Assembly (NCBI RefSeq): GCF_036588685.1 | Contig: NC_086378.1 | Coordinates: 16,244,001 to 16,308,000, forward strand | Reading direction: 5' to 3' | DNA from: Mytilus trossulus | Lineage: Eukaryota | DNA length: 64,000 bases | Shown: positions 44,396 through 64,000 of the stretch, in pieces | Layout of the letters: each line of letters begins with the position of its first letter | Position numbering within the stretch: position 1 is the first letter of the stretch | Notes under the pieces: generated by a model | Told to the model about the DNA's origin: nothing | The model's input: the letters and a program-made list of their open reading frames with translations, nothing else | Database searches by the model: none | Translations under genes and position numbers: made by a program

Positions 44396-44660
44396 ACAGA
44401 AACGGATCTACGCAAACAGATGACCAAATGTATAACAGAAGGAAAATACGGCATTGGAATACTTAAATACGGTTTACCTTTTGGAATTGATATTAGAATT
44501 GTAACAGATTCGACAAGATAATTAACAGAGAAGTATTAAATCGGAAAATTTGGATGGAAACTGATTAAACATTTTTGTCGGTGTTAACATCAAATATAAA
44601 ATGACAATCTAAGGTGCAAATTTGAAACAAATGAACATTATCACGTTGTATGGTTGACTA

Positions 44661-44705
44661 AAAAATTCTTAAGGGTTCCGCGGAACCCAGTGTCTCGCGT
44701 ACTTT
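44661..44705 (-). mobile_element. Helentron/HINE-type 3' terminus (sub-TIR, perfect palindrome, T-run)
   Basis: Minus strand reads AAGTACGCGAGACAC-T-GGGTTCCGCGGAACCC-TTAAGAATTTTT. The 16-bp perfect palindrome is at 44673-44688, in the same orientation as the RepHel ORF. Confidence 0.6.
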
Positions 44706-45607
44706 GGCTGTTAATTGCCATGATTGCAGGCTCAACGAAAAAGAGGAAAAAAATCAATGAAAATATTCCTCTTGATACTATCTTTTGAAGAAACTTCCAT
44801 CCAAGTTTGGTAAAGTCCAGGATAGTTTATGAATCTAATAAATTAAAATGTTTTGAAAACTTTAACTGCAGATTGTATGTAATGTTAACTGGGAAAAACT
44901 AAGTCTATTTATAAGTAAAATACAGATACACAGGTACAAAGTTTTAACAAAATTTCCTTCTAGGTACTAGCTTTTTATCATAAACAAGCTTCTGTCTAAG
45001 TTTGGTACAAATCCAAAATAGAATTAAAAACCAATTGTTCAGAGAACAATTGAAAGTCTTTCCACATCAAAGAAATTATAAAATGAAGCAATTTTTTCGT
45101 ATAAGGTGATAATGTGCTACTTCCGGTGAAGTTTCTTCCAGTCTCATATGAAAGCTTCTTTAAGATTGATTCCAAAAATATAAAGTTTCTATATACTTTT
45201 ATCTTCTATAATAATAATATATATGACTTACCATTACTAAAAGCCATGGATTCAACAACCATGCTAAAAGTCACACCATCCTTCTTTGATGATTAGTCTT
45301 TATCAACTATTTCACCTCATGGCAGTTGTAATTTTATATATTAAACAATGCACAAGAGCTAAAACAATTGAAATTTCTGTAGAATGTTAATTTTCATTCT
45401 GTAAAATATAAATTGATGATCAGTTAATTATAAAGAATTCATGGACAATGTCTAAGTTGTATGTTGATTCTACTGCATATTTTTGGTAAACTAATTTTCA
45501 AATGTAAGTCATTAATGGTCACTGTAAGAATACAACATAACATTATGAAATAAACATTCACATATGTGTAAAAAACTTTATGAAATTTTCTATTCTAGTA
45601 ATTTATC

Positions 45608-45685
45608 TTGATTAATTGATTGGATCTTTTTTTGCTTTACATCCAGTGGCAAATGTTTCATGCATATTCAGGATGACCAAACACC
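45608..45685 (-). repeat. SINE/LINE-type 3' tail with degenerate (TCAA)n end
   Basis: Minus strand: CATCCTGAATATGCATGAAACATTTGCCACTGGATGTAAAGCAAAAAAGATCCAATCAATTAATCAA. Confidence 0.5.
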
Positions 45686-45720
45686 TAAATAACTACAATG
45701 GTCATATACAGTATATGTTG

Positions 45721-45811
45721 CCAGAGCCCTGTTTGTTGTCAGCACTAAGTCATGTTTCAGTGCTGACATCCGCCTCCTACGACGGGGACGAAGGGTTGGA
45801 CTTCAGGAGGC
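45721..45811 (-). ncRNA. HDV-like (nested double pseudoknot) self-cleaving ribozyme candidate
   Basis: P1 GCCTCCT/AGGAGGC pairs 7/7. P3-L3 is (T)CG-TCCCCGT-CG(T), P1.1 is CC/GG, P4 is TGTCAGCACT/AGTGCTGACA (10/10), J4/2 is ACAAA and P2 is CCCT/AGGG, extendable by CCA/TGG. Confidence 0.75.
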
Positions 45812-45926
45812 ATAATTTTTTTAAGTTATGTCATTCTTAAAATCAAAATTAAAGCTGACATTCGTTTAATACTGAAGATATTGTTGTTGTTTTTTTGGTT
45901 CTACATGTTGTTTCTTTGTACCCTCA

Positions 45927-46622
45927 TTAGTCATATGGAACAACTATTTTCAGTGCCTCATGATAGCTGTAATATGTTGGAATAATTGTAACCTGTGTAT
46001 CATGACATCCTTTTACATACACATGATCAATAAGAGTTCCACCTTCTGTTGTTGGACTACTAACAAGTTGTCTGAAACCTTTTGATAACATGAAACTTAA
46101 TACTGTACAGCCACCTTTCAAAATATCTTGATTGAAATCGCCAATTACAACAACTCTTTCTGATAAGTCTTCCAATTTACAGATTAATGTTTCCATGTTC
46201 TCCATAAATTTTCCTAGATTATACCTCTGGGTTCTGTAAACAGTAGCAACAAAAACATTTCTACTTGGAATCTTGAAAACTATACATTCTAAGTTTGATG
46301 TCAAGTTGCACAATTCTGTTTCTGAAGAAAGCTTGTGAAAAACACACACACCACCATGCTGCATTTCCTTTAAAGAAGAATAATAAGAATCATCTTCTTG
46401 AAAAGCTAGAGATCTGGGCAAATGAAAACCATCATATCCAACCATTTCAAAGCAAGTGAATTCTTGATTAGCCCAGGTTTCAGTAAGACAAATGTAATCC
46501 GCACTTCTAAAGTCTGGATTTTGTTTAATATCTTCTGCATGAGTCTGTAAACCTTGAATATTGTGATACATTATCTGGAAAGATTGTGTATGTTCCTCTG
46601 CTGTATTCTCCATTTCAGGCAA
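45927..46622 (-). CDS. APE/EEP endonuclease domain of the Helentron (-1 frame relative to RepHel)
   Basis: YHNIQGL, ICLTETW, HGGVCVF, VYR, IGDFN, TLIDHVY and YSYHEAL motifs. Open for 231 codons. Confidence 0.93.
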   Translation of the reverse strand: MPEMENTAEEHTQSFQIMYHNIQGLQTHAEDIKQNPDFRSADYICLTETWANQEFTCFEMVGYDGFHLPRSLAFQEDDSYYSSLKEMQHGGVCVFHKLSSETELCNLTSNLECIVFKIPSRNVFVATVYRTQRYNLGKFMENMETLICKLEDLSERVVVIGDFNQDILKGGCTVLSFMLSKGFRQLVSSPTTEGGTLIDHVYVKGCHDTQVTIIPTYYSYHEALKIVVPYD

Positions 46623-49600
46623 AAATTTGTCATTTCTGAAACACCCTTTACAATATCAGGATCGCAGAAGATTTTCTTGTCAATTTTTTCAGCTTCTATG
46701 CTTTCAATGTGTAAACCAGATTTTGATGTAACTCTGCTAAGGGCTACATATGCCTGACCATATGTGAAACATTTATTCAGATCAACAACACATTCTTCAA
46801 CTGTTAATCCTTGAACTTTGTGAATTGTGCAAGCCCAGGCTAACTTCAATGGAAACTGTTTTCTTACACAATTGCTTAAAGGAATGTCTTCACTTGAAGG
46901 TTTCAATCCAACACAGTGTTTTCCACTGATGAGTTTTTGTACCTTTGCATTTCTTCCTACTCTTTCATTGTCAAAGTGAACATATATTATACTTGGGAGG
47001 GAATTTGGTGAGAAGTCTTTGATAGATATAACAGTTCCCATTACACCATTTACTAAACCATCTGCTGTGTCCTCATTCTTGATTAGCATTACTCTTGCTC
47101 CCTCAGCTAAAAGAATAGATATTGGGAGACAGACATCTGACTTTAAACAATGTACTTTTTTCAGAGTCAATTTCCCCGAAGTTTTGTCTTTTTGGAAATC
47201 TTGTGCCTCAATCAGTTTTGATTCTGTACATTGCTTCATTATCATCTCCTTGTTAAAGGTGTCAACCTCTGCATTTGTAGAATATATGTGCAAGGCTTCA
47301 TCGGGGCTATCACCAAAGCAGTGTTGTAATGTTTTTTTATCAGATGATGACAAACTTTCATTTTTCTGCTTAACACGCAATCTATTTAGTAGTTCAGCAA
47401 ACATTCCATCCTCACGTTGACGCATTATTTCATCCAACTCGGCAATTTCAAACAAGCCATTCCATAGCTGATTTGAGGGATTAGAAGGGTCATCTACATA
47501 CAATTTGTCTACCCTTTTTGTTCGAACAGGTGGTAACTGATAAAAATCGCCAACAGCAATTATTGAAACACCTCCAAATAAACAATTGTCTGGTCTTTTT
47601 TTAACCTGTCTGAGTCGCTCATGAACGAAAAACAACAATTTCTTATTGACCATTGAAATTTCATCAATTATCAAGATTTGCAAATGTTCTAACTTTGATC
47701 TGAGCGAATTAATTTTGTCTTCACTAAGAGTTGCATGATCAGGTGAGAGTGATTTGAAAATTCCAAGAGCACTATGAATTGTCAATCCATGGATATTAAA
47801 TGCAGCCGTTCCAGTTGGAGCTGTTAATAGAACTGTGAGATCATCTGGATTATTTGTTGTTTGTGCTAATATTCGAGTTGCTTCATATTGAATACATTTG
47901 ATCAAGTGACTTTTACCCGTTCCAGCTCCTCCAGTGATAAATAAATGTAAAGGCTCTGGTGTTTTTCCGTTTGCTTTTTGAATGCACCAATCTCTTACTT
48001 TATAGAGAATTCTTCTCTGTTTCACATTCAAACTTCTTAGCCTTGGAATAACTTCATTTTTTGTGAGAGAAACAGACAGCAAATTAGTTCCAACAGATGA
48101 TGAGCTCTTTTCATTCAAATCTGGTATTGATAAATCCTCCTCAATCACACTAGATACTTTGCCTTCATCTATACATTCTCTTCTATTCACTTCTGCTTCT
48201 GGGCATAACTCACACCAAGCATCTTCTTTAGGATCTTTTTCATGAAATTGCTTTTCTGCTTCCTCTAAATCATGACCATTTTTCACAAAGTCTGACATGT
48301 TTTTGATAACAATTTCTTTCACAGAACTTAATGTGTTATCCCCTTGAAACTTAACTCTTCCACATGTGAAGAAATTCTCATATGTTTGAAATAAGAGTGG
48401 TTTTAACTGTTCATCATATCTGTATGGCAAATACAGTTGCAAAATGCTTTGATAATATTTTTCTGGGGAATTTTCCGGAGAGAAACGAGGATATTTTATA
48501 ACTGCAGGTGAAGTTCTTGTGCGTTTTCTAATATACCCAAGTGAGCCATCAAGTTTGAAGGTTGTGTCTTTATTAATTTTCTGTGGTAATTGTGATTCTA
48601 GAATAACACTGTATTCAGAAGTGAATCTTGCAAGACACAATTTGATAAAGATATCAATATGTGGTCTTCCTTTATATCTATCAACAATGTTGTTCATCCA
48701 AGTACTATTTTCATCTTCATCTTCATCTTCACTGTCACTATTATGTCTTTTTCTTTTAGAAGACTTACAATTTTGTTGTTTCTCTAGGTCTTTCAAAGGA
48801 ACGCTCATTCTACATGGATTTTCACCAACAGGTATAAATTCTACTTTCCTTGAACACTCTCGTAATCTCAATCCAGTAACTCTAAACACTGCTTCTTGTG
48901 CGCTTATCTCTCTATGGTGTAAATATGAAGTTCCAACTTTTTTCATAGTCTGTTGAGCATTTAGATTTCCTTCTTCTGCTTCATTTTTAGTCTGTTGCAG
49001 GAGTAATCCTAGCTCTCTCTCAGCTTTACTTATATAACTTATAATGTATACAACACAGGAAAATGCATCCAAAATATATTGTATGTCCATATTTGCATCC
49101 CAAGCCCTCAAAAGATGTGGGTTATACTGATTGGTGTATATTTCATTTGGCTGACGTTTGAGAACTACTGTATTGCGATTGGTGATAAAACGATAATATG
49201 TTTCGAAGCTTTCTTGAGCAAGTCCTATCTTCTTGAAAATTTCAGAAACATCTAAGTTTTCATCTTCATGCTTTTTTATAACTTCCCATAAGTCGGACAA
49301 TATTTCCTTTGCTAATTCTTCATCGTCCTTTGAATCTTCATCTGGATCACTTGGTTCTGAGATAAATGTTCTAGTTGAGGGAGGTCTTGGGAAATTAAAA
49401 CGACATACTGTTCCCTTTTTCTTACATGATTTTGAATGTTTTTTACTGTGTTGGTGTACTGCCATAACAATGTCATGCAATTCTTTGTCTTCCTTTTCAT
49501 CTGGTATCTCACATGTTATGTACTTGTCAATAAAGGTAATAATGTCATCAATATCATCTTCGCCAAATTTTGGAGCATTTTCTACCCAAAACAAACAATG

Positions 49601-52600
49601 TGTGTGGGGAGAACCTCTTTGTTGAAATTCAACTCGGTAAAAATAGTCGATTACTTTCCCTATTGGTTGAGCTTCTGACATGATAACATCCTTCAGAAAC
49701 ATATGAAATCTATGATCAAACATTCTTACTGCTGTAACAGGATTGCTACACAGAACTTTACATTTTTCATCCCATGTCATATTTTCACTATTTCTCGTGT
49801 CACCTTGCTGTTTTAAAATTATGTTTATAATTTCTGACCATCTGAAGTCTGCAGAAGAAAAAGAACAGAAGAATGTGGGAACTCCTAACTGTCTTATCAT
49901 TGCAAATATATCTTTTTGTGAGCTTTGCCAATAGGGAGGAGTTCCACGAATGGGTTTTAAATATTTTATAGCTTCATCTTTCTTAAATAATTCTTTTAAG
50001 GTTTCCTTGTTGCAAAGCATTTCTCTTGTAACTTTCTTTCCTTCTTTCGAAAAAGGACATTGTTTTCTAAGAGATATCTGAACGTTTGAAATCACGCTAC
50101 TGAGCTCTGTTAAATATTGACTGAAAAATATGTAGTTGGTATCTCTAGCAAATCTATTTTCAACACTCATTAATCGAAGATTAAAGTATCTTCCAATTGT
50201 TAGTTTTTCATCACGGTCTTCATCCGAAGTATTTTTACCTGATGGAAAGTGCACAGGAAAGGTTTTAGCTTCAATACCTGGTTCTTTTAGAACACTAAGT
50301 GGATTGTTATTTTCTGCTGGAGCTAAATTAAATACTTGATCAAAGCATAAATCTAAAGCCTCTTGACCTATGTCAGCAGGTTGTAAACAAGTATCTAACT
50401 GAACACCACGTAACCTATCATCAATATAGCTATACTGTTCGCTTTCTTCTTCTCTTTCATTGCTTTCTTTTGAAGACTTTGACATGTTTGACGCATCTTT
50501 CTGTATTTTATTATTCCTGACCGACTCAGTAGAATCAGATTCAGTTTCATCATTCACTACTTCATCATCATTTATCTCAGGAATAGGGTTTATCCATTCG
50601 TCATTGATAGCGACATCTTTATACCATACGTTTGTATCCTTTAAATACACAAGTGCTTGCTCCAAATGGTTTGGTCTTACAAATTGATATTTTTCATAGC
50701 CTTTGTAGTTGAGCTTTCTCTTCAGTTTAACCTTAAGTAAAAGACTTTCATCTTCTGATCGTGGTAGTATTGTTGTAACTTTTGTCAAATCAGACGGCAC
50801 ACAAACTACAGGTCCATGAACCCCTTTTTGTCCTCCTTTTGGTAGAGCCATTATCTTCATGAATGGAATGTTCAGGGCTATAAGTTGTTGCTCTATTGCA
50901 TTTAGCTGTTTTAATTCTAAAGGAACATCTTCAAGCATTAAACCATTTGAAAACGACTCTGCAGGTGTTTTACCTTTTATCATTTTACGATGACAAGTAT
51001 AACATATCCATAGACTTGTTCTGCATGTTCCTTCAAAAGCACAATGAGTATTGCAGTCATCTGAACATTTGTGTTTATATTTCTCTGTTGTGCATGAATC
51101 ATATATAGATTGATCATAGGATCCCTTTTTACAGATTAGAACCTGTTTTTCAAAGAACAGCCTCAAGCAACAGGAACAAACACATTCTGGACCTTTCTGA
51201 ACTGCATCTTTAAATTTTCCGATAACTTCAGTTATTTGTTTGTTTTCCTGTTTTAAATTTTCACGACGTGTTTTGGTTTGTTGTTTAACCTTACATCTAT
51301 GTGAATCATCATCTGCATACTTCTGTATACTTGCTTGTTTAACATGTTCTTTGTGCTTTTCGTCTTCCTTATACTTTTGTACACTGACTTGTTTCACATG
51401 TTCTCTGTGCTTCTCATCTTCCTTATACTTTTGTACACTTACTTGTTTCACATGTTCTTTATGTTTTTCATCTTCCTTATACTTTTGTACACTTACTTGT
51501 TTCACATGTTCTTTATGCTTTTCATCTTCCTTATACTTTTGTACACTAGCTAATTTCACATGTTCTTTGTGGTTTTCATCTTCCTTATACTTTTGTACAC
51601 TAGCTTGTTTCACATGTTCTTTGTGGTTTTCATCTTCCTTATACTTTTGTACACTAGCTTGTTTCACTAGTTTCTTGTGATTTTCATCTTCCTTATACTT
51701 TTGTACACTTGCTTGTTTGACATGTTTCTTGTGTTTTTCATCTTCTTCATATTTATTTATACTAGCTCGTTTCAATTTTTCTCTGTACTCGTCATTTTCT
51801 TGATATTTTTGAATACCAGATTGTATTAAGTTATCTCTGTAATCTTTGTCTTCATGATACTTTTCTTTTCCAGCTCGAATTAAGGAATCTCTGTAATCCT
51901 CATCTGTTTTATATTTCTGAGTTCCAGATTCTATTAACGCATCTCTGTATTCCTTGTCCTCTCGATATTTCTTAATACCTGCTTGCTTTAAATTATCTCT
52001 AAATGTCTGATCTTCTTCATACTTCTTAATTTTTTTTAAACGTGTTCCTTCATTTTCCCAATATTTTCTTTTCAGTGTGGAAGTCTTTCTTGCCTTAAAT
52101 TCCTCATCTTTCCTGTATCTCATCCTTTCTTTTTCAGCTTTTGATAAGACTTTCAATTCATCATTCCAAAAGTTATCAGAATCATTTGTTTTTGAAGTTG
52201 GCACCTCATATTTTCTTTCAAATTCATACTTTTCCCTTCTAACTAGACTAGATAGCATTCTGTTTTGAAACCTTGACTTTTGAGTTACAGCTGTGACAAC
52301 TTCGTAATGATTGATGGCAGTCAGATGTTGAAGATAAATAGCCTGATCATTAATTTTGTTTTTGCTACATAATTGAGATGAAGAATATTTAATCCATGAA
52401 TCATTGAAATAAGTGTAAATGTCAGTTTTAAGCAGGTCTGCACATGCTATAATCTCCAACTCAGTTCCCCATACATTATTTTCGTTCATCTGGAGAGTCT
52501 GTATGTGCTCTTTGACAGTTTTAAATCTTGGCTGTAAAAAAGATTTAAATATTTCTGCATTTCTTATCAAATGATCAACTATAGCTTTTCTTATATTTCC

Positions 52601-54919
52601 AAAAAACTCTTGTCTATTTGAAAGTGCATATGAAATAGCTCGAAACAAACAATTTCCATCACCTGTGGTAGATTTTGTAGCAGAAGGGGGGCCCATATCA
52701 AATATATTATTGGTGATTGTCTTGTGTATATGCTTTGTTGGTATCTTCACAATGAGACAAAGCCTTTTCTTTGCAACAGTGTTTATTGGTTTAAAATCAT
52801 AAGACAAGTCAGTTGCAGACACAATTTCGACATCAGATTCATCCTTGTTCATATCATCAATAAAAGGCACATCTGCATTACTTTCAGAGCTACAGATGTC
52901 AAACATTGGATTTATTTTTTTTGGAAGTTCTGGACTTTTCTCGTTTTTTACGACGACAATTTCAGGTAGCTCATAGTCACTGGTGTCAATTGGTGCATGA
53001 TTTTCAATATCGTTATAGTCAGTGTTGTTCATTTGTTCATGGTTTTCAGGAACTTCATTGTTGTACATAACAGGTTCTCCAACTATAGAGATGCTTACTC
53101 CTGTAACTTCAAACCACTGATTTTGACTGGGTCCTAATACCATGTTGCAACAGTATTGATACAGATGATCTAGGCTGCTCAATTTCAAAAGTAAACTTTT
53201 GCCATTACTGTGCTTTAAACCAAACTCGTTTCTTGCATGTGAATCAAACAAAAAAAAGTCTTGACCATGTTTCAAAGCTAAAAATGAAGTATCATATGCA
53301 CATATAAAGCAAGCATCATAATCTACAAGTGATTCCTGTAAAGCTTGGTCTAATGGCAAAGAATTACCAAATTCACTAAAATCAATGGTTTCAGATGTAT
53401 CTATTACAGCTGATATTGACTCTTTTAGTGTCATTTCCATCAATTTTCCTGAAATATCTAATATTGTTGGTAGGTCGGATATTAATAAGTGATGATTATT
53501 ACCACTAACACGGCTATATAAATCATTTCCATAAATCAGAACCTTATCTAAATATTTTTGATCCCAGTAGGTTAAATCTTTCAATTTACTAAAAGCAAGA
53601 GCTGAACAACAGTTTGCCACACATTGCTTACCACTGTTTAAACCAAACCTTATATCTCCTTGGTGAAAACTACCTTGTACAATTGTATTTCTAATATCTG
53701 ATCTAATAACCTTTACGTAATTCTTAACCACAGCTGTGGTTTTTTTTTTGTTACATTGCGATTTGGATGTAGGTTTGTTCTTTATTTTGTTCTGATATTG
53801 TTCAAATTGAACTATTTCACTATCTGTTTCTGTATATGGACAAATAAGTGAGTTGTGGTTTAGATCTAGTTGTTCAATCAAATGTTTATACTTCTTTTTA
53901 ATAATCCTATTTTCATCCCTTTTTTCAATCTGATTTTGATCCGGTTTTTTTATCTGATTTTCATCCAGTTTTTTAAACAGCTTTTTATCCAGTTTTCCAA
54001 TCCGATTTTTATCCAGTTTTCCAATCCGATTTTTATCCAGTTTTTCAATGCTATTTTTATGAAGTTTTTCAACATGATTCTGGTCTAGTTTTTCAGTCTG
54101 ATTTTGTATATCACTTGTATTTTGATATAGATTATCATCATCTTTATTTCTCACATATTGTTTGTTTGTAGAGCTGAGACTCTGATCTAGTTTTTCATTT
54201 TCATTCTCATATAAATGTTCAATTCTATTCTCTAATATACTTTCTATTTCATTTTCTAATATATTTTCTATTTCATTTTCTAATATATTTTCTATTTCAT
54301 TTTCTAATATATTTTCTATTTCATTTTCTAATATAATCTCGTCTTTTTCTACAGTATATTGACATTCTATAGAGATAATGCTCTCGTCTTCATCTAAATC
54401 ATGACAGTTTTGAGAGATGATGCTCTGATCTAAATCATGACAGTTTTGAGAGATGACGCTCTGATCTAAATCATTACAGTTTTGAGAGATGACGCTCTGA
54501 TCTAAATCATGACAGTTTTGAGAGATGACGCTCTGATCTAAATCATGGCAGTTTTGAGAGATGATGCTTTGATCTAAATCATGACAGTTTTGAGAGATGA
54601 TGCTCTGATCTAAATCATGACAGTTTTGAAAGATGATGCTCTGATCTAAATCATGACAGTTTTGAGAGATGACACTCTGATCTAAATCATGACAGTTTTG
54701 AGAGATGACGCTCTGATCTAAATCATGACAGTTTTGAGAGATGACGCTCTGATCTAAATCATGACAGTTTTGAGAGATGTTGCTCTGTTCTTTAATATTT
54801 GATTGGTTGTTGCACTGACCATCTCTAAAATTATTATTTTTTTCCTGTGTCCTCTTTCTCATTCTTTCTTTATTTTCTTTCAACTTGGTACTTCTTGCCT
54901 TTTTACTTTTCTTAGGCAT
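46571..54919 (-). CDS. Helitron Rep/Helicase polyprotein (~2782 aa): repeats, herpes-tegument-type DUB, OTU, Cys-rich region, HUH Rep, PIF1 helicase
   Basis: DUB motifs QGSFHQG..GKQCVANC..FDSH; OTU GDGNCLFRA..WG..HY; Rep TFFCSFSSAD, RVEFQQRGSPHTHC and YIISYISK; helicase GGAGTGKS, IIDEISMV, GDFYQLPPV, TIHKVQG and YVALSRV. The first ATG (MPKKSKK, 54919) lies 3 nt after a strong acceptor ttttcttttttcag. Confidence 0.97.
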   Translation of the reverse strand: MPKKSKKARSTKLKENKERMRKRTQEKNNNFRDGQCNNQSNIKEQSNISQNCHDLDQSVISQNCHDLDQSVISQNCHDLDQSVISQNCHDLDQSIIFQNCHDLDQSIISQNCHDLDQSIISQNCHDLDQSVISQNCHDLDQSVISQNCNDLDQSVISQNCHDLDQSIISQNCHDLDEDESIISIECQYTVEKDEIILENEIENILENEIENILENEIENILENEIESILENRIEHLYENENEKLDQSLSSTNKQYVRNKDDDNLYQNTSDIQNQTEKLDQNHVEKLHKNSIEKLDKNRIGKLDKNRIGKLDKKLFKKLDENQIKKPDQNQIEKRDENRIIKKKYKHLIEQLDLNHNSLICPYTETDSEIVQFEQYQNKIKNKPTSKSQCNKKKTTAVVKNYVKVIRSDIRNTIVQGSFHQGDIRFGLNSGKQCVANCCSALAFSKLKDLTYWDQKYLDKVLIYGNDLYSRVSGNNHHLLISDLPTILDISGKLMEMTLKESISAVIDTSETIDFSEFGNSLPLDQALQESLVDYDACFICAYDTSFLALKHGQDFFLFDSHARNEFGLKHSNGKSLLLKLSSLDHLYQYCCNMVLGPSQNQWFEVTGVSISIVGEPVMYNNEVPENHEQMNNTDYNDIENHAPIDTSDYELPEIVVVKNEKSPELPKKINPMFDICSSESNADVPFIDDMNKDESDVEIVSATDLSYDFKPINTVAKKRLCLIVKIPTKHIHKTITNNIFDMGPPSATKSTTGDGNCLFRAISYALSNRQEFFGNIRKAIVDHLIRNAEIFKSFLQPRFKTVKEHIQTLQMNENNVWGTELEIIACADLLKTDIYTYFNDSWIKYSSSQLCSKNKINDQAIYLQHLTAINHYEVVTAVTQKSRFQNRMLSSLVRREKYEFERKYEVPTSKTNDSDNFWNDELKVLSKAEKERMRYRKDEEFKARKTSTLKRKYWENEGTRLKKIKKYEEDQTFRDNLKQAGIKKYREDKEYRDALIESGTQKYKTDEDYRDSLIRAGKEKYHEDKDYRDNLIQSGIQKYQENDEYREKLKRASINKYEEDEKHKKHVKQASVQKYKEDENHKKLVKQASVQKYKEDENHKEHVKQASVQKYKEDENHKEHVKLASVQKYKEDEKHKEHVKQVSVQKYKEDEKHKEHVKQVSVQKYKEDEKHREHVKQVSVQKYKEDEKHKEHVKQASIQKYADDDSHRCKVKQQTKTRRENLKQENKQITEVIGKFKDAVQKGPECVCSCCLRLFFEKQVLICKKGSYDQSIYDSCTTEKYKHKCSDDCNTHCAFEGTCRTSLWICYTCHRKMIKGKTPAESFSNGLMLEDVPLELKQLNAIEQQLIALNIPFMKIMALPKGGQKGVHGPVVCVPSDLTKVTTILPRSEDESLLLKVKLKRKLNYKGYEKYQFVRPNHLEQALVYLKDTNVWYKDVAINDEWINPIPEINDDEVVNDETESDSTESVRNNKIQKDASNMSKSSKESNEREEESEQYSYIDDRLRGVQLDTCLQPADIGQEALDLCFDQVFNLAPAENNNPLSVLKEPGIEAKTFPVHFPSGKNTSDEDRDEKLTIGRYFNLRLMSVENRFARDTNYIFFSQYLTELSSVISNVQISLRKQCPFSKEGKKVTREMLCNKETLKELFKKDEAIKYLKPIRGTPPYWQSSQKDIFAMIRQLGVPTFFCSFSSADFRWSEIINIILKQQGDTRNSENMTWDEKCKVLCSNPVTAVRMFDHRFHMFLKDVIMSEAQPIGKVIDYFYRVEFQQRGSPHTHCLFWVENAPKFGEDDIDDIITFIDKYITCEIPDEKEDKELHDIVMAVHQHSKKHSKSCKKKGTVCRFNFPRPPSTRTFISEPSDPDEDSKDDEELAKEILSDLWEVIKKHEDENLDVSEIFKKIGLAQESFETYYRFITNRNTVVLKRQPNEIYTNQYNPHLLRAWDANMDIQYILDAFSCVVYIISYISKAERELGLLLQQTKNEAEEGNLNAQQTMKKVGTSYLHHREISAQEAVFRVTGLRLRECSRKVEFIPVGENPCRMSVPLKDLEKQQNCKSSKRKRHNSDSEDEDEDENSTWMNNIVDRYKGRPHIDIFIKLCLARFTSEYSVILESQLPQKINKDTTFKLDGSLGYIRKRTRTSPAVIKYPRFSPENSPEKYYQSILQLYLPYRYDEQLKPLLFQTYENFFTCGRVKFQGDNTLSSVKEIVIKNMSDFVKNGHDLEEAEKQFHEKDPKEDAWCELCPEAEVNRRECIDEGKVSSVIEEDLSIPDLNEKSSSSVGTNLLSVSLTKNEVIPRLRSLNVKQRRILYKVRDWCIQKANGKTPEPLHLFITGGAGTGKSHLIKCIQYEATRILAQTTNNPDDLTVLLTAPTGTAAFNIHGLTIHSALGIFKSLSPDHATLSEDKINSLRSKLEHLQILIIDEISMVNKKLLFFVHERLRQVKKRPDNCLFGGVSIIAVGDFYQLPPVRTKRVDKLYVDDPSNPSNQLWNGLFEIAELDEIMRQREDGMFAELLNRLRVKQKNESLSSSDKKTLQHCFGDSPDEALHIYSTNAEVDTFNKEMIMKQCTESKLIEAQDFQKDKTSGKLTLKKVHCLKSDVCLPISILLAEGARVMLIKNEDTADGLVNGVMGTVISIKDFSPNSLPSIIYVHFDNERVGRNAKVQKLISGKHCVGLKPSSEDIPLSNCVRKQFPLKLAWACTIHKVQGLTVEECVVDLNKCFTYGQAYVALSRVTSKSGLHIESIEAEKIDKKIFCDPDIVKGVSEMTNFCLKWRIQQRNIHNLSR
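51300..52030 (-). repeat. Coding 54-nt (18-aa) tandem repeat KYKEDEKHKEHVKQASVQ
   Basis: About 8-9 near-identical units plus several diverged ones (KYxEDxxYRDxLIxxG), all in frame. Confidence 0.95.
53890..54340 (-). repeat. Coding 24-nt (8-aa) repeats ILENEIEN and EKLDKNRI-like
   Basis: Visible in the translation and in the DNA, for example repeated ATTTTCTAATATATTTTCTATTTC. Confidence 0.9.
54385..54785 (-). repeat. Coding 36-nt (12-aa) tandem repeat SVISQNCHDLDQ, 11 copies
   Basis: CTCTGATCTAAATCATGACAGTTTTGAGAGATGACG units arranged head to tail. Confidence 0.95.
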
Positions 54920-55284
54920 TATCTGAAAAAAGAAAATATGTATTATATTATTCCATATCTTACATTTTAGTTTCTCAAAAAATAGAAACAGATTCATGAT
55001 TGTACTGTGTTCCACAATCAGCCTACTGTATAGTATGCTTAGAAAATACAAATTGCCCTGTGATAACAAATACCTTCAATGCAATGGTTCTATATATATA
55101 TAAAATAGAAACGACTTATAATCGATGACCCAAGAAAAGATCACATTATTAAAAACCCTATACCAGTACTTTTTTACCCAGTCATAACCAAGAAATATGC
55201 CACAGATAAATTTCCAATCATTAGGCATCTGTGTATAGGATATTTATAGATTATTCAATTTTTTTTCTTTATAAAAATTGGGAT

Positions 55285-57022
55285 TGTATCCATGGCACGT
55301 AAATGATGCCCCCAATTGCATATCTTATAAAGTTACAAATGGACATACCTGAAGAAAGGTAAAAGTGACACTACACAAAGGTTTTGGCCCAAGAAAATAA
55401 AATGCTTGACAAATTTTTCAAATTGTCATATAATGTTTAGAAATGCATAGGGTCAAGAAATATAAATGAAAAAAAGATTTTTGTCTGATGCGGTCACAAT
55501 TATTGTCATAATATGTACTGTTATCATAAAAACGATGAAAAATTCAGAATTTATGCAGTTTTATAACTGAATTTTGGTTGTGGAAACATCTTGCACAGCT
55601 AAGAAACAACAAAATAATTTAACAGAAGCTTTATTATAACTGTTGCCATCATCTTACCAAATATAAAGTTATTTCTTGTGTTCGCACATACTTTTTCAAA
55701 CCAAAATATACTTATAATTTTATGAAAAATAAGAAAAATCACAAATTTTGACAAAATACGCAAATTAAATCATGATTTGTTGCCATGGTAAATTGTTCAA
55801 TGTCAAATTTGTTAAGTTTTTCTAATATATTGTACCTTAGTCAAGTTTTCATTGATTTAAGGGTATGTATGATTACTTTAAAATTTGTAGTATTTTTTGG
55901 GCCTTATTGCCCTAGTCCTTTGTACTTCAAACTTGATCTGAGTTTTGTTGTAATAAGCATAGTGTATACGTTTAGTGACGTTTGGTTGAGGCAAATTCAA
56001 ATTAGGGAACGGAAATCAAAATGTCGGCAATATTTCTATTTGTAAAGGGGCATTACTCTAGAACAAGGAAAATGACACCACCAAAATTCTAATTTAATCA
56101 GTGTTTTGTTATCATATGCATTGTGTATAAGTCCCATCACATTTGGTTCAGACAAACTAAAGTAAGAAGGGAAATAAAATTTGACATTTTTTTCATTTGT
56201 AAAGGAGCAAAACTCTAGAATAGTTTAAGTGACACCACCGAAATTCGAGCTTGATCTGTATTTTGTGTTTTTAAGCAAGGTGTAAAAGTTCCATAACTTT
56301 TTATTTATGCAAACTGAAGTAAGAGAACCGAAAGGAACAATTGAGCAATTTTTCCATTTGTAAAGGGACATAACTCTAGAATGATTTAATTGACACCACA
56401 AAAATTTGAACTTGATATGTATTTTGTGTATATATTTTTAAAGCATTGTGTTTAAGTTTCATAACATTCATGACATTTGGTTTAGGAAAACTGAAGTTAG
56501 AGAACAGAAACATAAAATTCAGCATTTTTTCCATTTGTAAAGGGCACAACTCTAGAACGGTTAAAGTGACAACATCAAAATTTGAATTTGATCTCAGTTC
56601 GGTAAAAATTAGCATTGTGTATTTTAAAATCAATCAGATCCAGGACCTATCCAGTATATCTTATCAAAATCCTTTGTTTTTAATTCAATTTTCTATTTGC
56701 ATACATTTAGAATAATTAAAAGCTGATAAACTCAGTGTATGATAAATTAATATTTCCGGTTATAGAATACATTCTTCAGCATTTATTTCCATATTTTTCT
56801 AGAAATTTACAATTGAATGTTTGTAGTATAATTATTGTGTCTGTATTAAAAAAGGAGTTTCGGTTATGGTCATGTAGACCTAGGCTTATCCTCATCAGTG
56901 TATAAGTTTCATAACATTTATTTGAGGCAAACTTGAGTTAGAGAAAAGAAACCAACTTTGGGACGTACGGATGGACAAGGGTAAAACTTAATGCCCTTCC
57001 ATTTAGGCAGGAGCATTAAAAT
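55285..57022. mobile_element. HINE-like element with ~160-bp tandem core repeats and nested insertions
   Basis: Cores TTGATCTG..TTTTG...CCATTTGTAAAGGG..AACTCTAGAA..GACACCAC repeat across 55920-56625. The right end has GGAC repeats and ATGCCC...GGAGCAT-TAAAA. Confidence 0.7.
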
Positions 57023-57279
57023 AATGATTAAGCGATGAAGTTGTCAAAAAAAAAGCACTCATTGTCAAATGCATGGACAAAACAATTTTAACATTCAACT
57101 GTCACTAGAGAAGTGTGGAGCAGTAAGTCTGCTTAAATAATAATGACAATACCATTCATTAATCATGTTAACTATACTTTTCACTAAAAGCCAGATAATA
57201 TTGAGATATTGAATAGGTCAATCCTGACTTTTGATTTGGGGTGAAGTTAATCTATCTCATCACAGAAGATCTTATAATA

Positions 57280-57402
57280 AACTCATCATAGATACCAGGA
57301 TTGAAATTATATGTGTGTGCCAGAATTATTTCATCGGTGACCCTTGATAAAAAAAAAAAGAAGATAAAAAGGCCAAATAAAGTACAAAGTTGAAGAGTTC
57401 AT
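57280..57402 (-). repeat. Penelope/hammerhead-associated repeat with the ribozyme core deleted
   Basis: The reverse complement matches the flanks of 16600-16730 (CTCTTCAACTTTGTACTT...GTCAC.GATGA...CTGGCA...AATCCTGGTA). Confidence 0.6.
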
Positions 57403-58004
57403 TTTTTTCAATGTAACAATGTTGTGTCTCAATACTGAAATGGCTCTTTATCAAATAGTTGCATAATAGAAGGAATCAAAACACACACAGTTTTTCTCAC
57501 ATACAGATGTATCATTTCCCCAAAAGTCCATTTGCTCTGGGACAAGCGTTCATACATGTATGCCTTTGCTTCTTCCAATGTTTATTTACAACCACAAACA
57601 AAATAATATTATTAAGAATAAAATATTTAATTCATCTACAATATATTCTTCTTGATTTTCAAATGATTCCTACCAAGTCTAATCTGTATATGTATCCAGG
57701 AAGATAACCAAAATTAATTCAAGGACTTCACTGTGACCTATGAATGAAAAAGTATTAAAATATATAGCAAATAAATTAGCAAAATCAATCATGACAATCT
57801 AATTTTTTTTGGATTGTTTTATCTTCTGTGTGTTTGTTAATAAAAAAAAACCCTCTAAAATGAATGTTTGTTTGCCTTGCTTTATAAAGATGTCAAAAAA
57901 TGATTACTCTTATATCTGGTATACCTATTTAATCTTGTTCAGTTAGTTGAAAACAATTAGTTAAATCAATACTGAATTTTAAGAAATGTTGATTTATCAA
58001 TATT

Positions 58005-58300
58005 ATGTATGTGCCTGTGCCAAGTTTATATGAGGCTGTAAATCAGGGGTTGTTATTTGTTGCTGTGTAACACATTTGTTTTTGTACATTATTTGTACAT
58101 AAAACAGAGTGTTTGTCTTTTTTTGTTGGAGTTGTTTAACATTTGTCCTTTGGTGGCTTTTATAGCTGACTATGTGGTATAGGCTATGTTGATTTTTGAA
58201 GACCATACAGTCACCTACAGTTGTTAATTTTTGTGTCATATCGACTCTTATGGAGAGTTGTCTTAATGGTAATCATACCACATCTAATGAGTTTTATATT
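58005..58300 (+). repeat. Dispersed SINE-like repeat with a twister 3' half and a structured motif
   Basis: TGTGCCTGTGCCAAGT..., then TGACTATGTGGT...TTTGAAG-ACCATACAGTCA stem, then a GAGAGTTGTCT...CATACCACATCT tail also seen at about 32110-32142. Confidence 0.6.
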
Positions 58301-58892
58301 AACTAATGTTTTGTCAAAATGAGCCTTTCATTTGTTTTATAAATTTCTATTTTAACCATGTTTGAAGACTGATGGGGTGGGGTTTTCAAGCTCAATTTTA
58401 AGAGATGATCATAAGTTATACTCAAAACCAAGTTTGGTTGTATGGTTGTCACATATGTTAGTGATAATTTTCCCGTATTTAAATTTCCCTTCTACCTTCT
58501 GCCATAAAGCAAATTTGTTGAAACCATACAGATTCATGAAATATATAAATAAAAAAAAGATCATTAAAAGACTCATTAAAACAAATAGCGAAAGAACCCT
58601 TTATCTCTGGCTTGAGAAGACTGCTGCAAGCGTAAATATGCAATGTCAAATACCAAAAAGAAGAAAAAAATACTCAATATAATGATATATACAATATATA
58701 AAAACAAAAAAATACTTGAATGTGTTCTTTAGCTGCTATTTGTTGTTCATGGAAAGCCTATGTCAAAGTTTTGTAAAATTTGTTGAAAATCCCTAGATCA
58801 GTAAAATGCAAGGAAATGAAAAAAGTATTTTGAAAACTTTGATTCAGATATTGTCTCTTATAAACCTAAACAAGTTTCTGTCAAAACTTCAT

Positions 58893-59997
58893 AAACTAGA
58901 TGCTCTAAAGAGCCTGTGTTGCTCACCTTGGTCTATGTGAATATTCAACAAAGGACACAGATGGATTCATGACCAAATTGTGTTTTGGTGATTGTGATGT
59001 GTTTGTAGATCTTACTTTACTGAACATTCTTGCTGCATACAATTATCCCTATCTTTAATGATTGGCCCAGTAGTTTCAGTGGAAAATGTTGGTAAAAATT
59101 TTCAAATTTTATGAAAATTGTTTAAAATTGACTATAAAGGGCAATAACTCCTTAGGGGGTCTTGATTGTGGCTAAGTATGATTTTATTTGGCTCAGTAGT
59201 TTCAAAGGAGAAGATTTTTGTAAAAAATAACTAAGATTTACGTACTAGAGGCTCTAAAGAGCCTGTGTCGCTCACCTCGCTCTATGTGCATATTAAACAA
59301 AGGACACAAATGGATTCATGACAAAATTGTAGGTGATGGTGATGTGTTTGAAGTTCTTACTTTACTGAACGTTCTTGCTTCTTACAATTATATCTATAAT
59401 GAACCTTGCCCAATAGTAACAGAGAAAAATATTTGGTAAAAATTTACATAAATTTACCGAATTAATGAAAATTGTTAAAAATTGACTATAAAGGGCAATA
59501 ACTCCTAAAGGGGTCAACTGACCATTTTGGTCCTGTTGACTTATTTGTAGATCTTACTTTGCTGAACATTTTTGCTGTTTACAGTTTATCTCTATTTATA
59601 ATAATATTCAAGATAATAACAAAAAACAGCAAAATTTCCAATTCAGGAGCAGCAACCCAACAACCAGTTGTCCAATTCATCTGCAAATTTCAGAGTAAAT
59701 AGATCTTGACCTGATTAACAATTTTATCCCATGTCAGATTAGTTCTAAATGCTTTGGTTTTTGAGTTACAATCCAAAAACTGCATTTTTTTTTAGCCATG
59801 GCAGCCATCTTGGTTGGTTGGCCATGTCACCTGACACAATTTTTAAACTAGATAGCCTAATGATGATTGTGGCCAAGTTTTATTTTATTTGGCCGAGGAG
59901 TTTCAGAGAAGAAGATTTTTGTAAAAGTTAACGACGACAACGGACGCCAAGTGATGAGAAAAGCTCACTTGGCCCTTTGGGCCAGGTGAGCTAAAAA
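58893..59997 (-). mobile_element. HINE/DINE-1-like element with a duplicated 3' end
   Basis: The ACTAGA(G)GCTCTAAAGAGCC hairpin and GCTCACCT sub-TIR occur at 58895 and again at 59244. The other end is AGCTCACTTGGCCCTTTGGGCCAGGTGAGCTAAAAA, next to a GAC microsatellite. Confidence 0.85.
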
Positions 59998-60521
59998 GAA
60001 TACCTCTAAAATGTGTTTGATGAAGACTAACAAGCTAACTTTACATTTGTCTGATTTTTGTTAACTTTTGGAGTTTGACGACATGAATGAGTTATATTAA
60101 GGTACCATTATTTCTGTTTTCATTATTTAAAACATGATGGTCTCAAATGAGTTCGTCATGTGCATATTGCAAGCAGAACAGGATTTTTTTGTTATCACAA
60201 ATCTGTTTTATTCTGACTGAATTATCCTTACCCAGATATAAATTATGCAGTCAACTGCGACCTTTAGCTGATTTCACTTCAATTCTCCAGTATAATTATT
60301 TGTGATCTGAAAATCAAAAAAGAAAGTTTAAATTATAGAACTGACAAATTTGTATCCCTAATACGGGTATTTTCAGTATCAATATAAAATAGCAGTAACT
60401 GTAATTAGAAAGAAAATTCATAAAGCTTTGACATATTGTAATATATTTGAAAGTAAAGATTGGACAATGCTACACTGAATATTTGGATTGTCAATTGATC
60501 TATAATTAACCCAAGATAATA

Positions 60522-60800
60522 CAGCTATTTCCACTGAGTGTGTAGCCAAAGGTAATATCTTTGGTTAGCTTGCTTGTTAGCTGAACCGTGAAGTCATTGT
60601 TAGGTTAGGTAAACTACCCTACATGCACTTTAAACTTAGACTAGTGCGACGGAAAACTTATTTTAATCTGTCTGTTGGACTATGCTACTTTGAAAGGAGG
60701 GTATATAGTATACCTGACCCTATAATGACTTTATGGTTCAGCTAACAAGCAAGCTAACCAAAGATATTACCTTTTGCTACAAACTCAATGGAATCAGCTG
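60522..60800. mobile_element. 279-bp MITE with ~90-bp TIRs and TA TSD (Tc1/mariner-like)
   Basis: TA|CAGCT.TTTCCA...AAAGGTAATATCTTTGGTTAGCTTGCTTGTTAGCTGAACC matches the reverse complement ending GGAATCAGCTG|TA. Confidence 0.9.
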
Positions 60801-61846
60801 TAAGACAGATACTAATAAAAAGCACATTTGTCAATGTGGGCAAGGATTTCTATGTGTTTGAGGAAGAATACTTTAAAATGTGTTCCCTTTCTAAACTTTT
60901 GATCTTAAAATGTATATACATTGTATTAGCTCATTGAATATTTTTTCCTGATTTAAAACTAAATGTTTGGTCTCAAATGTGTTTGATGATGCAAATTTAT
61001 TTGTTTGCTTACTGAAAATGTTCTCAAATATGCTTGATCTCTACTTAAGTTACCCTCCAAAACTTTTGGTCTTAAACGTGTTTGTTGAAATTAACTTTAT
61101 ATCTGCTTGCTTTCTAAAATTTTTGGTCTCAAATGTTTAATAATCCTTACTGAAATGTACCAGATGCAACCAACTGTGACTGTAAGAGGAGTCTAGTGCT
61201 AATTCTCCAAACAATGTTAAATGCTATAAATTATCTGAAAATAAAAAAAAAGATAATGAATCTACACTGGAATATCAATAGTATAATCATACAACAAATA
61301 TTGACTGAAACTAGTACTATTATAGTCATGAACATGATGAAGCTACATCATATTGTCATGAGATAAAAGGAACTAATGATAGGCAAACTTCTTAATGTTG
61401 CAATTGTTGACCTTTGTTTTTGATGAGGGTAGTTTTTCTTGTAAACTTTTTTAGATGAAGGTAACTTTTACATTTGTTCATCTAGTCTCATAAGTAAAAA
61501 ATGTAAAACTACTACCTTTGAGACTAAATAAATAATAATTGTTAGGTTGATGTTTAGACGAGTTGTATATATATACATATGAAGTCTCCGAATGATTGTA
61601 TAATAAAAACTATATATATATATATATATACCTTAACATGCTTATAAATACAGGTACAGAGTCCTTTCACTCCCAGAACATGTTTGAACCCTTAATGTTT
61701 ATTTTTATTCAAATACATTTAGTACTGGTTGAAAAATTAGAAGATTTTAAGATGTACATGATGTATACATCCAAATATTTATATTTTCATTAATAATTAA
61801 TAGGATAGCCTTTGAAAAAGCATTTGCTATATATACATGATATATA

Positions 61847-62389
61847 TGTTCCGGACCATCATGACCATATGAGTATTTGGACCATATGCATATGGTCATG
61901 ACTATATGGTTATATACTCATATGGTCAGGGTAATTAACACTCTAATACAGTTTACTTATAATACTTCTAAACTCTTCATATGGTATGACCGTTCATTAA
62001 AAAGACGCTATCATACAGTTAATTTTATTATTTATTATAATCATGATAATAAAACAATTTGCTTAAATAAAAATTAAAAGTTTCACACTGAGTTAATTTT
62101 TCTTTCTTGTCAAAACTATAATAAACACATTTTATACCAATGGTCATTACCGATGGTCGTTACTAATTTGTTATTACAATTGAATGGCGATATGTCGACT
62201 TCAAAAAAAAATCAAAAAATTTCTTAAAGAACTGCTACACAAGAAGTCACTGCAAAGTAACATAGTTTATTTAAAAACGAGTATTATACTCATATGGTCC
62301 AACCATACACATACAGTCAGACCATATAAGTATACGCATTTGGTCATGACCATACGCATATGGTCCAAATACTCATATGGTCCGGAACA
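61847..62389. mobile_element. Ginger-like MITE (TGT termini, 4-bp TSD TATA), short form
   Basis: TATA|TGTTCCGGACCAT...ATGGTCCGGAACA|TATA with palindromic ACCATAYGCRTATGGT subterminal repeats. Confidence 0.85.
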
Positions 62390-62616
62390 TATACTGTGTA
62401 TCTCGCACAAAAATGTCAAAATCTAGGTTGTTTATTTAAAACTGTTTACATACAAAACACTGGGCATCATAAATCAATCTAGTTATATGCTATATCTTAA
62501 TGCAATACATAAATTACCATGTAAAAATAAACAAGACTAGTTGCAGATTTGCAAACACAGCAATTTAAGGTTGAATTAACGACAATATTTTGTTTTTGAC
62601 ATGTTTGATATGTAAA

Positions 62617-63617
62617 TGTTCCAGACCATATGAGTATTTGGACCATACGTGTATGGTCATGACCATATGGGTATATACTCATATGGTCGGGGTAATTAAC
62701 AGGTTTACTTCTAGTTGTCACGTCATTAAAAAGACACTATCAAAGGTAATTTTATTATAGATCTATACAAAAATTAAAAATAACAAGATGAACAAAATGA
62801 AAATAAGCAGTTTCACACAGTAAATTTCATCACTAGTCAAAACTACAGTAAAAACATTTTTTTTCTTCATTTATCGATGTGTTATTACGAGTGAATGGCA
62901 AAATGTCGACTTGAGAAGATAACTTCCAAAAATATCTTAATATACTGTTACACAAGAAATCAATTGTTTTACTACATGTACTATAAACTGACGTAAATTC
63001 AACATGATAAAGACTCTAATAATTTGCTTACTTTTGAAACTTTATATAATAAGCATTTATTTAGCAGTGCAATATTCAGACTTTTTATGCTAATACGTGT
63101 TTTTGTTGTCAAAAAATGAATGACGTAACCGGCAAGGACCCTAGTTTAATTTTCTAAGTTGACTGGTGATATGATGCTCTTCAGTCTTGTTACGATAATG
63201 GAGATCTAGAGCTTTTTAAAAACATCGTAGACACATCAGAATGACCAAGGACCCAAGAAAAGCTATGTTACTGTATGGAAATAAATGTCACCCTACGCAT
63301 ACAAGCAATAATACCATTAGCGATGAAAAGTAGCTTTGGCATAATTATTTATTGCTATTTGAATTGTAAATAATGCAATAGCATGTACAAATCATTGTTT
63401 TTTATAAAGTTTTCTAATGCATATTATTGAAAAACAAATACCTCTATGGTCCAAATATTCATATGGTCCGGCCCGTTAATAACCAAACGAGTATCATACT
63501 CATATGTCCGACCCATCGTGTACGGTCGGACCATACGCGTATGGTCGGACCATATGAGTATACGCATATGGTCATGACCATACGCGTATGGTCCAAATAC
63601 TCATATGGTCCAGAACA
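62617..63617. mobile_element. Ginger-like MITE (TGT termini, 4-bp TSD TAAA), long form
   Basis: TAAA|TGTTCCAGACCATATGAGTATTTGGACC...GGTCCAAATACTCATATGGTCCAGAACA|TAAA. The interior is homologous to 61847-62389 with about 460 bp extra. Confidence 0.85.
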
Positions 63618-64000
63618 TAAACATGGTAAACAAGCAAGTTTAAGTAAGCACTATTTATCATTTTATTACACAGCAAAACTTACTTCGTAAAAAATTTAAT
63701 TAAAGTTCTGTGTTTATGGTGCTTTATATAACTGGTAAAATGTAATAAGACTAATCGAGATCATGTTGAACATCTGAAATCACTTTATTTGAATAATTAT
63801 GTCTTTTACAGAACTTTTTGAAGGACTGGTTATTCAAATTAACTTAATTTTCAATACAAAAATTTAGTAGACATGGTAATTATAAACAAATACTCAAATA
63901 TATTTATATTTATATTAGTTACAGGGATTTGCTTTCAAATAACAAAGAACATCGACCAATAAGAATAGTGAGAAGAAAATGCCGAGAACTATAAGTATTT

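Follow-up and report, generated by a model that had tools for sequence, protein, structure and literature searches.

A candidate HDV-like self-cleaving ribozyme conserved behind the transposase ORF of a Mytilus Helentron lineage

In a 64-kb stretch of the Mytilus trossulus genome (the whole 64,000 nucleotides that we analysed, here called the window), a minus-strand Helentron with RepHel and endonuclease ORFs is followed, behind its endonuclease stop codon, by a strongly conserved block of 93 nt. What is this block, and why would a rolling-circle DNA transposon keep it? The original prediction, made from the letters of the sequence, had proposed an HDV-like self-cleaving ribozyme that trims the transposase message. 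After comparing the copies of the block across the genome, we hold that the best explanation, with a probability of roughly 0.6, is that it is an HDV-like double-pseudoknot self-cleaving ribozyme, acquired by the ancestor of one Mytilus Helentron lineage and kept under strong purifying selection in the 3' UTR of the RepHel-endonuclease gene. The HDV assignment rests on an invariant single-stranded core that matches the family consensus, on a conservation boundary at the cut site, and on P4-only variability. Cleavage between 45812 and 45811 and its biological role are inferred.

The host element has the domain set and architecture that define the HLE2/Helentron subgroup of Helitron-like elements (PMC11417382), with Rep, PIF1 helicase, and DUF6570 domains, a C-terminal Exo_endo_phos domain, and a 3' stem-loop near its terminus (Table 1). 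Intact copies elsewhere encode RepHel and endonuclease in a single ORF of 2927 aa, and one intact sister copy matches a RefSeq protein of M. trossulus at 100% identity. The window copy differs from an otherwise identical sister copy, located 21,612 bp (21.6 kb) away on the same strand, by a 1-bp deletion (C) at 46626 that splits the ORFs into different frames; the junction affected lies on the minus strand at 46565-46630. Because the sister retains the C and the intact copies have one ORF, the frame change looks like a recent deletion and not like programmed frameshifting. A protein search gave relatives in Mytilus edulis (80-86%) and oyster (53-55%). The genome itself holds at least five Helentron families, with endonuclease identities of 100-73%, 51-58%, 43%, 35-40%, and 25-29%, and open frames of 2,800-3,200 aa in many Helentron copies suggest recent activity.

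Table 1. Features of the Helentron and of the conserved block behind its endonuclease ORF, in window positions; the pairings listed are predicted.
Feature	Coordinates	Strand	Remarks
Helentron RepHel ORF, 2832 aa	46574..55069	minus	Herpes_teg_N, OTU, DUF6570, Helitron_like_N (Rep), and PIF1 helicase domains
C-terminal AP-type endonuclease ORF, Exo_endo_phos, 231 aa (46622-45930)	45927..46622	minus	stop at 45929-45927
Spacer, A/U-rich, 115 nt, stop codon to predicted cleavage site	45812..45926	minus	65% identity, except invariant A-2 and U-1
Conserved HDV-like ribozyme block (putative), 93 nt	45719..45811	minus	predicted scissile bond between 45812 (U-1) and 45811 (G1)
P1 5' strand G1-U7, GCCUCCU	45805..45811	minus	7/7 pairs; G1 partner is C or U
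P3 UCG/CGU enclosing L3 UCCCCGU	45779..45791	minus	U21-U33 at P3 base; L3 C25 and C26 pair with G42 and G41 (P1.1)
P1 3' strand AGGAGGC	45772..45778	minus	C40 is U in three copies, giving G1-U
P1.1 3' strand, GG	45770..45771	minus	descriptor element RN
P4 hairpin, 10-12 bp, variable L4 loop	45737..45768	minus	compensatory pairs
J4/2 A-CAAAC	45731..45736	minus	putative catalytic C77 at 45735; CNRA* match; invariant in 24 copies
P2 3' strand	45719..45730	minus	AGGG pairs with C17-U20 (CCCU, 45795-45792); 4 contiguous bp
Helentron 3' terminus: hairpin CAATTGTTC-tct-GAACAATTG then GTTTTTAATT	45022..45052	minus	homology among copies stops at 45022

Reading the minus strand bore out the layout on which the original prediction was built. 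Its quoted sequence is exact base for base, with G1 at 45811, and the distance that it had put at about 115 nt after the Helentron endonuclease stop is 115 nt from that stop to G1. The pairings that it listed can all be read from the strand: seven perfect pairs in P1, UCCCCGU as L3, CC/GG as P1.1, a 10-bp P4, CAAA in J4/2, and CCCU/AGGG as P2. The P4 stem (UGUCAGCACU/AGUGCUGACA) has 10 perfect pairs, or 12 if it is extended. Of the limits given to the block, 45721-45811, the start stood but the end did not, as conservation runs two bases further, to 45719. A possible extension of P2 across a 1x3 internal loop (A15-U89, C14-G90, and C13-G91, for a total of 4+3 pairs) would explain why conservation reaches position 93, and the only variable bases at the 3' end of P2 (86-88) fall within this internal loop. 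The strands follow one another in the order P1-J1/2-P2-P3-L3-P3'-P1'-P1.1'-P4-J4/2-P2', which threads as a nested double pseudoknot. Threaded in this way, the 11 sequence variants had about 96% of their cells paired, compared with 35-54% when the partners were slid by one to three columns.

We used a home-made descriptor, a published descriptor, and Rfam models to evaluate how closely this fold agrees with HDV-like ribozymes. The home-made descriptor (7-bp P1; 3-bp P3 with at most one mispair; L3 T-Y-C-N-C-G-Y; two-pair P1.1; P4 hairpin; C in J4/2; P2 of at least 4 bp) matched only once, at this site, when both strands of the 64-kb window were scanned. In 300 dinucleotide-shuffled versions of the window, the rate was 0.053 descriptor matches per window, which amounts to roughly a thousand chance matches in 1.3 Gb, so a descriptor match alone is insufficient. 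When the block itself was shuffled, with the P4 hairpin kept or not, 0 of 300,000 sequences satisfied the descriptor; a conserved element of such composition would thus not resemble an HDV ribozyme by accident. The search that had been proposed as a check on the original prediction succeeded for the descriptor but not for the covariance models: scans of 3.5 kb and of 131 nt gave no Rfam ribozyme family, and the HDV-type families of Rfam (HDV, CPEB3, and other curated HDV-like ribozymes) had no match in the 131 nt even at E ≤ 10. We treat this miss as a caveat and not as a refutation, since the Rfam HDV-type models are narrow and unable to encode pseudoknots.

The published RNArobo/Luptak descriptor (supplement of PMC4870747) consists of a G1-pyrimidine pair in a 6-7-bp P1, a 6-7-bp P2, a strict 3-bp P3, L3 TYYHCG*Y, RN after P1', a P4 stem, and J4/2 CNRA*. 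The block agrees with P1, L3 (UCCCCGU), RN (GG), and J4/2 (CAAAC). The P1 helix, which should have 6-7 bp from G1 and a pyrimidine partner, begins with G1-C in most copies and G1-U in three; L3 fits U-Y-Y-H-C-G-(N)-Y, including the reverse-wobble G, and is invariant in 24 copies, as are the two P1.1 pairs (C25-G42 and C26-G41) and J4/2, where one extra A precedes the C-N-R-A that begins with the putative catalytic cytosine. The two flaws that the original prediction had conceded are also real. Where P3 should have three Watson-Crick pairs, its base is U21-U33 (T-T in the DNA) in 10 of 11 variants and U-A in one copy, and P2 has four contiguous pairs where at least 5-6 are called for. These two deviations, together with one extra A on each side of P4, mean that the published strict descriptor would reject the block. 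Among R2 ribozymes, the active wasp ribozyme carries a P3 mismatch, P2 mismatches occur in about a third of elements, and only the catalytic C and four other bases are rigidly conserved (PMC3774820). At the cut site, U is the preferred -1 base of the HDV ribozyme (PMC1874588), and U-1 is invariant among the copies of the block.

The shuffles bear directly on whether the resemblance arose by chance in a region whose conservation has another cause, such as an 18-codon micro-ORF. An ATG at -2 to +1 (A-2, U-1, G1) does open such a frame, and the lack of an Rfam match would fit this explanation, but we find it hardly credible: the shuffles never reproduced the motif, third codon positions of the frame are as invariant as the others, and conservation continues 38 nt past its stop. 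The block was rejected as a micro-ORF on this conservation pattern. The frame itself (minus strand, 45758-45813) has a stop, TGA or TAA, in most subfamilies that is shifted in one, and its pattern of conservation is not coding-like. No tRNA or tmRNA was found.

The block occurs 26 times in the 1.3-Gb genome; 24 of these copies are intact, one is truncated at its 5' end, and one has decayed. All of these lie just after the endonuclease stop, in Helentrons with an endonuclease at least 73% identical to that of the window, and the exact core pattern CGTCCCCGTCG-N8-GG has 24 matches in the genome, all within copies of this Helentron lineage. Absence from sister copies, which the original prediction had named beforehand as grounds for abandoning it, was thus not observed; every sister copy of the lineage carries the motif, at a fixed place after the stop. 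Among eight subfamily representatives, identity was 94% in the 93-nt block, 86% in endonuclease coding DNA overall (92% at second and 78% at third codon positions), 65% in the 115 nt upstream of G1, and 70-71% downstream of the block. The borders of this conserved island lie no more than two bases from the predicted cleavage site on the 5' side and at position 93 on the 3' side.

Variation within the block, counted over 24 copies with the decayed copy L052 excluded, affects 17 of the 93 positions. Only one of these is among the 42 positions of the catalytic core (P1 except the G1 partner, P2, P3, L3, P1.1, and J4/2), compared with 16 of the 51 positions in the periphery (Fisher p = 2.6e-4). 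The sole core change, U33A in a single copy, repairs P3, and the peripheral sites are in the P4 tip, L4, J1/2, and the G1 partner. Variation of this kind agrees with what HDV-like ribozymes tolerate. Two P4 pairs have changed on both sides (45-74, G-C/A-U; 54-65, A-U/U-A). The one-sided stem changes (C40U, C50U, C52U, C70U, and those at positions 54 and 55) all give G-U on the sense strand. Only P4 covaries; P1, P2, P3, and P1.1 are paired without covariation because these pseudoknot helices never vary. The decayed copy carries six substitutions that break pairs of P1, P2, P3, and P4, so the block is not mutation-proof and mutates once selection on the element is gone.

We also considered a conserved structured RNA that has an HDV-like fold, or descends from a ribozyme, and no longer cleaves, serving instead as a 3'-UTR structure for stability, localization, or exonuclease blocking. 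A nested minimum-free-energy alternative fold of -35.6 kcal/mol competes with P1, and the variation fits both folds equally (97.7% of cells paired across variants in the nested alternative and 96.5% in the HDV fold); in addition, the short P2 and the U-U at the base of P3 might be enough to disable catalysis. However, the single-stranded catalytic positions (U24, C28, and G29 in L3 and C77-A80 in J4/2) are invariant across subfamilies, although a scaffold need not keep them, and an R2 ribozyme with a mismatch in P3 is still active (PMC3774820). A non-cleaving structure is thus unlikely in our estimation, and an active ribozyme remains our preferred reading of the block.

The direction of the one-sided stem changes speaks against selection at the DNA level, under which the block would be a cis element of the Helentron (an ssDNA hairpin or a protein-binding site for rolling-circle transposition or transcription control) with a fortuitous resemblance to HDV. 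Changes that give G-U on the sense strand would give C-A on the other. Helitron-type elements do use ssDNA hairpins (PMC11417382, PMC4778049), and the P4 palindrome reads identically on both strands; conservation nevertheless spans 93 nt, beyond the palindrome, a sequence of this composition would agree with the HDV core by chance less than once in 300,000, other Helentron families do without the block, and the true terminal hairpin lies about 700 nt further 3'. A DNA-level element is therefore quite improbable. As the Helentron 3' terminal hairpin in particular, the block was rejected, the true terminus and its hairpin being at 45052-45022, 790 nt downstream of G1.

The block belongs to one Helentron lineage. 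Aligning other copies, as had been suggested with the original prediction, gave a mixed outcome: the motif is constitutive in this lineage, compensatory changes are limited to P4, and the block does not extend to Helentrons generally, being absent from families with 35-58% identity. In the same genome, the block model R1 and the strict and relaxed descriptors found neither a homologue of the block nor another ribozyme in Helentron families with 51-58%, 43%, and 35-40% endonuclease identity, nor was any Rfam ribozyme family found in these. The block is thus not needed for Helentron function in general. One relaxed-descriptor match downstream of the endonuclease in the 43%-identity family (L070-L072, ~1061-1198) is A/U-rich, starts with U and not G, has a UUUU P2, and is probably spurious. 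A pattern scan and a protein-anchored scan of metagenomes gave no matches.

Because other Helentron families in the same genome lack the block, it would have been acquired once by this lineage, plausibly by capture of a LINE head, and it has persisted while third codon positions diverged by about 22%. Gene capture is a noted trait of Helitron-type elements, and HDV-like ribozymes normally head non-LTR retroelements, which makes capture a likely origin. The same background would suit a passenger, with the block as the ribozyme head of a small SINE or LINE fragment that had inserted into the Helentron, yet all model matches and all 24 exact-core matches lie inside this Helentron lineage at a constant place, without a free-standing copy. 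The sequence past position 93 is poorly conserved and indel-prone, with no retro-tail common to the subfamilies, and the block was co-inherited with the element throughout the divergence given above. We consider a passenger very unlikely, and a ribozyme-headed SINE was rejected on the lack of free copies.

For the preferred reading, a self-cleaving ribozyme, we propose the following mechanism. RNA polymerase II would transcribe the ORF and the 115-nt A/U-rich spacer, and the 93-nt ribozyme would fold co-transcriptionally, with P1-P1.1-P4 stacked beside P2-P3. C77 (45735) in J4/2, with a Mg2+ ion that the U24/G29 region of L3 holds, would catalyse attack of the U-1 2'-OH on the 45812/45811 bond. 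Cleavage would leave the coding RNA ending in the encoded A-rich tract and UAU, with a 2',3'-cyclic phosphate. The severed part would comprise the remaining ~790 nt of the element, including the transposition hairpin, plus any read-through into flanking DNA or a tandem copy. No conserved poly(A) signal was found on either side of the ribozyme; ATTAAA occurs ~55 nt upstream in only five of eight subfamilies. On this ground we favor, as the probable outcome, an insulated transposase message whose 3' end forms independently of poly(A), with dosage control as the main alternative.

A more speculative role is that of a working RNA-processing module that cuts read-through or multimeric transcripts, from head-to-tail arrays or circular transposition intermediates, into unit lengths. 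We regard this role as doubtful at best; the window copy has, 21.6 kb away on the same strand, an identical sister. If the role is true, a DNA rolling-circle element would have taken over the device that serves HDV and viroids in their RNA rolling circles.

The block can be compared with several known systems. Like the HDV-like ribozymes that head mobile elements, it has a mobile host, a double pseudoknot, a G1-initiated 7-bp P1, L3 U-Y-Y-H-C-G-Y, J4/2 C-N-R-A, a variable P4, and unconstrained sequence upstream of the cut, and its P1.1 has two G-C pairs as in viral HDV. Unlike them, it resides in a class II rolling-circle DNA transposon, stands 3' of the ORF and not at the 5' end of the element, and has the P3 U-U and a P2 of only 4 contiguous bp. 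Because it is placed 3' of the ORF, the Helentron block would trim the tail of a message and not create a head. With the viral HDV genomic and antigenomic ribozymes and the mammalian CPEB3 ribozyme, the block shares the fold and the putative general-acid cytosine, as well as the viral CC/GG of P1.1 and the preferred U-1, but it shows no sequence-model similarity to them (Rfam), takes no part in rolling-circle RNA replication, and is not intronic.

In position, the block resembles the hammerheads of Penelope-like elements, which are also small nucleolytic ribozymes downstream of an ORF and cut the normal 3' end off the message. The 3'-UTR hammerheads of rodent Clec2 genes are likewise small nucleolytic ribozymes downstream of an ORF. 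Both belong to another ribozyme class, however, and their hosts are retroelements or cellular genes and not a DNA transposon. The 3' terminal hairpin of Helitrons and Helentrons shares with the block a perfectly palindromic stem located in the element's 3' part. It is a separate sequence, a stem-loop at 45052-45032 and 10 nt from the Helentron end, whereas the P4 stem is ~700 nt inside, within the 93-nt conserved block.

The great majority of known genomic self-cleaving ribozymes belong to retroelements, viruses, viroids, and a few host genes. The original prediction had stated that no HDV-like ribozyme was known to be described in a Helitron 3' UTR, and our full-text searches likewise turned up no report that connects self-cleaving ribozymes, HDV-like or other, to Helitrons, Helentrons, or DNA transposons. 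While the class of ribozyme is familiar, the host element, the 3' position, and the P3 and P2 deviations are new. If true, a catalytic RNA under selection in the 3' UTR of a class II rolling-circle transposase would extend the use of ribozymes to DNA transposons, and the block would provide a testable case of a transposon shaping its own message, through poly(A)-independent 3' ends, read-through insulation, or dosage control of a nuclease-bearing transposase. Natural variants in which P3 has a U-U and P2 is interrupted also appear to escape strict HDV descriptors and Rfam models.

Several further features of the locus concern the Helentron and its surroundings. The whole Helentron and at least 9 kb upstream of the ORF (window 45022-64000) are repeated at ~100% identity 21,612 bp away in the same orientation, and the repeat stops exactly at the Helentron 3' terminus; a (TAA)n run follows the terminus of the sister. 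Either the element is very large or this 21.6-kb-spaced repeat arose by a recent tandem duplication. A ~1-kb element at ~62609-63623, nested upstream of the Helentron ORF, has ~110-nt terminal inverted repeats and a high copy number, with dozens of loci at 84-92% identity. The Helentron 3' end is followed directly, at ~44659-45030, by a repeat that has internal tandem units of ~190 bp and recurs at many loci with 95-97% identity. It may belong to the satellite-carrying, non-autonomous elements that are described for bivalve Helentrons.
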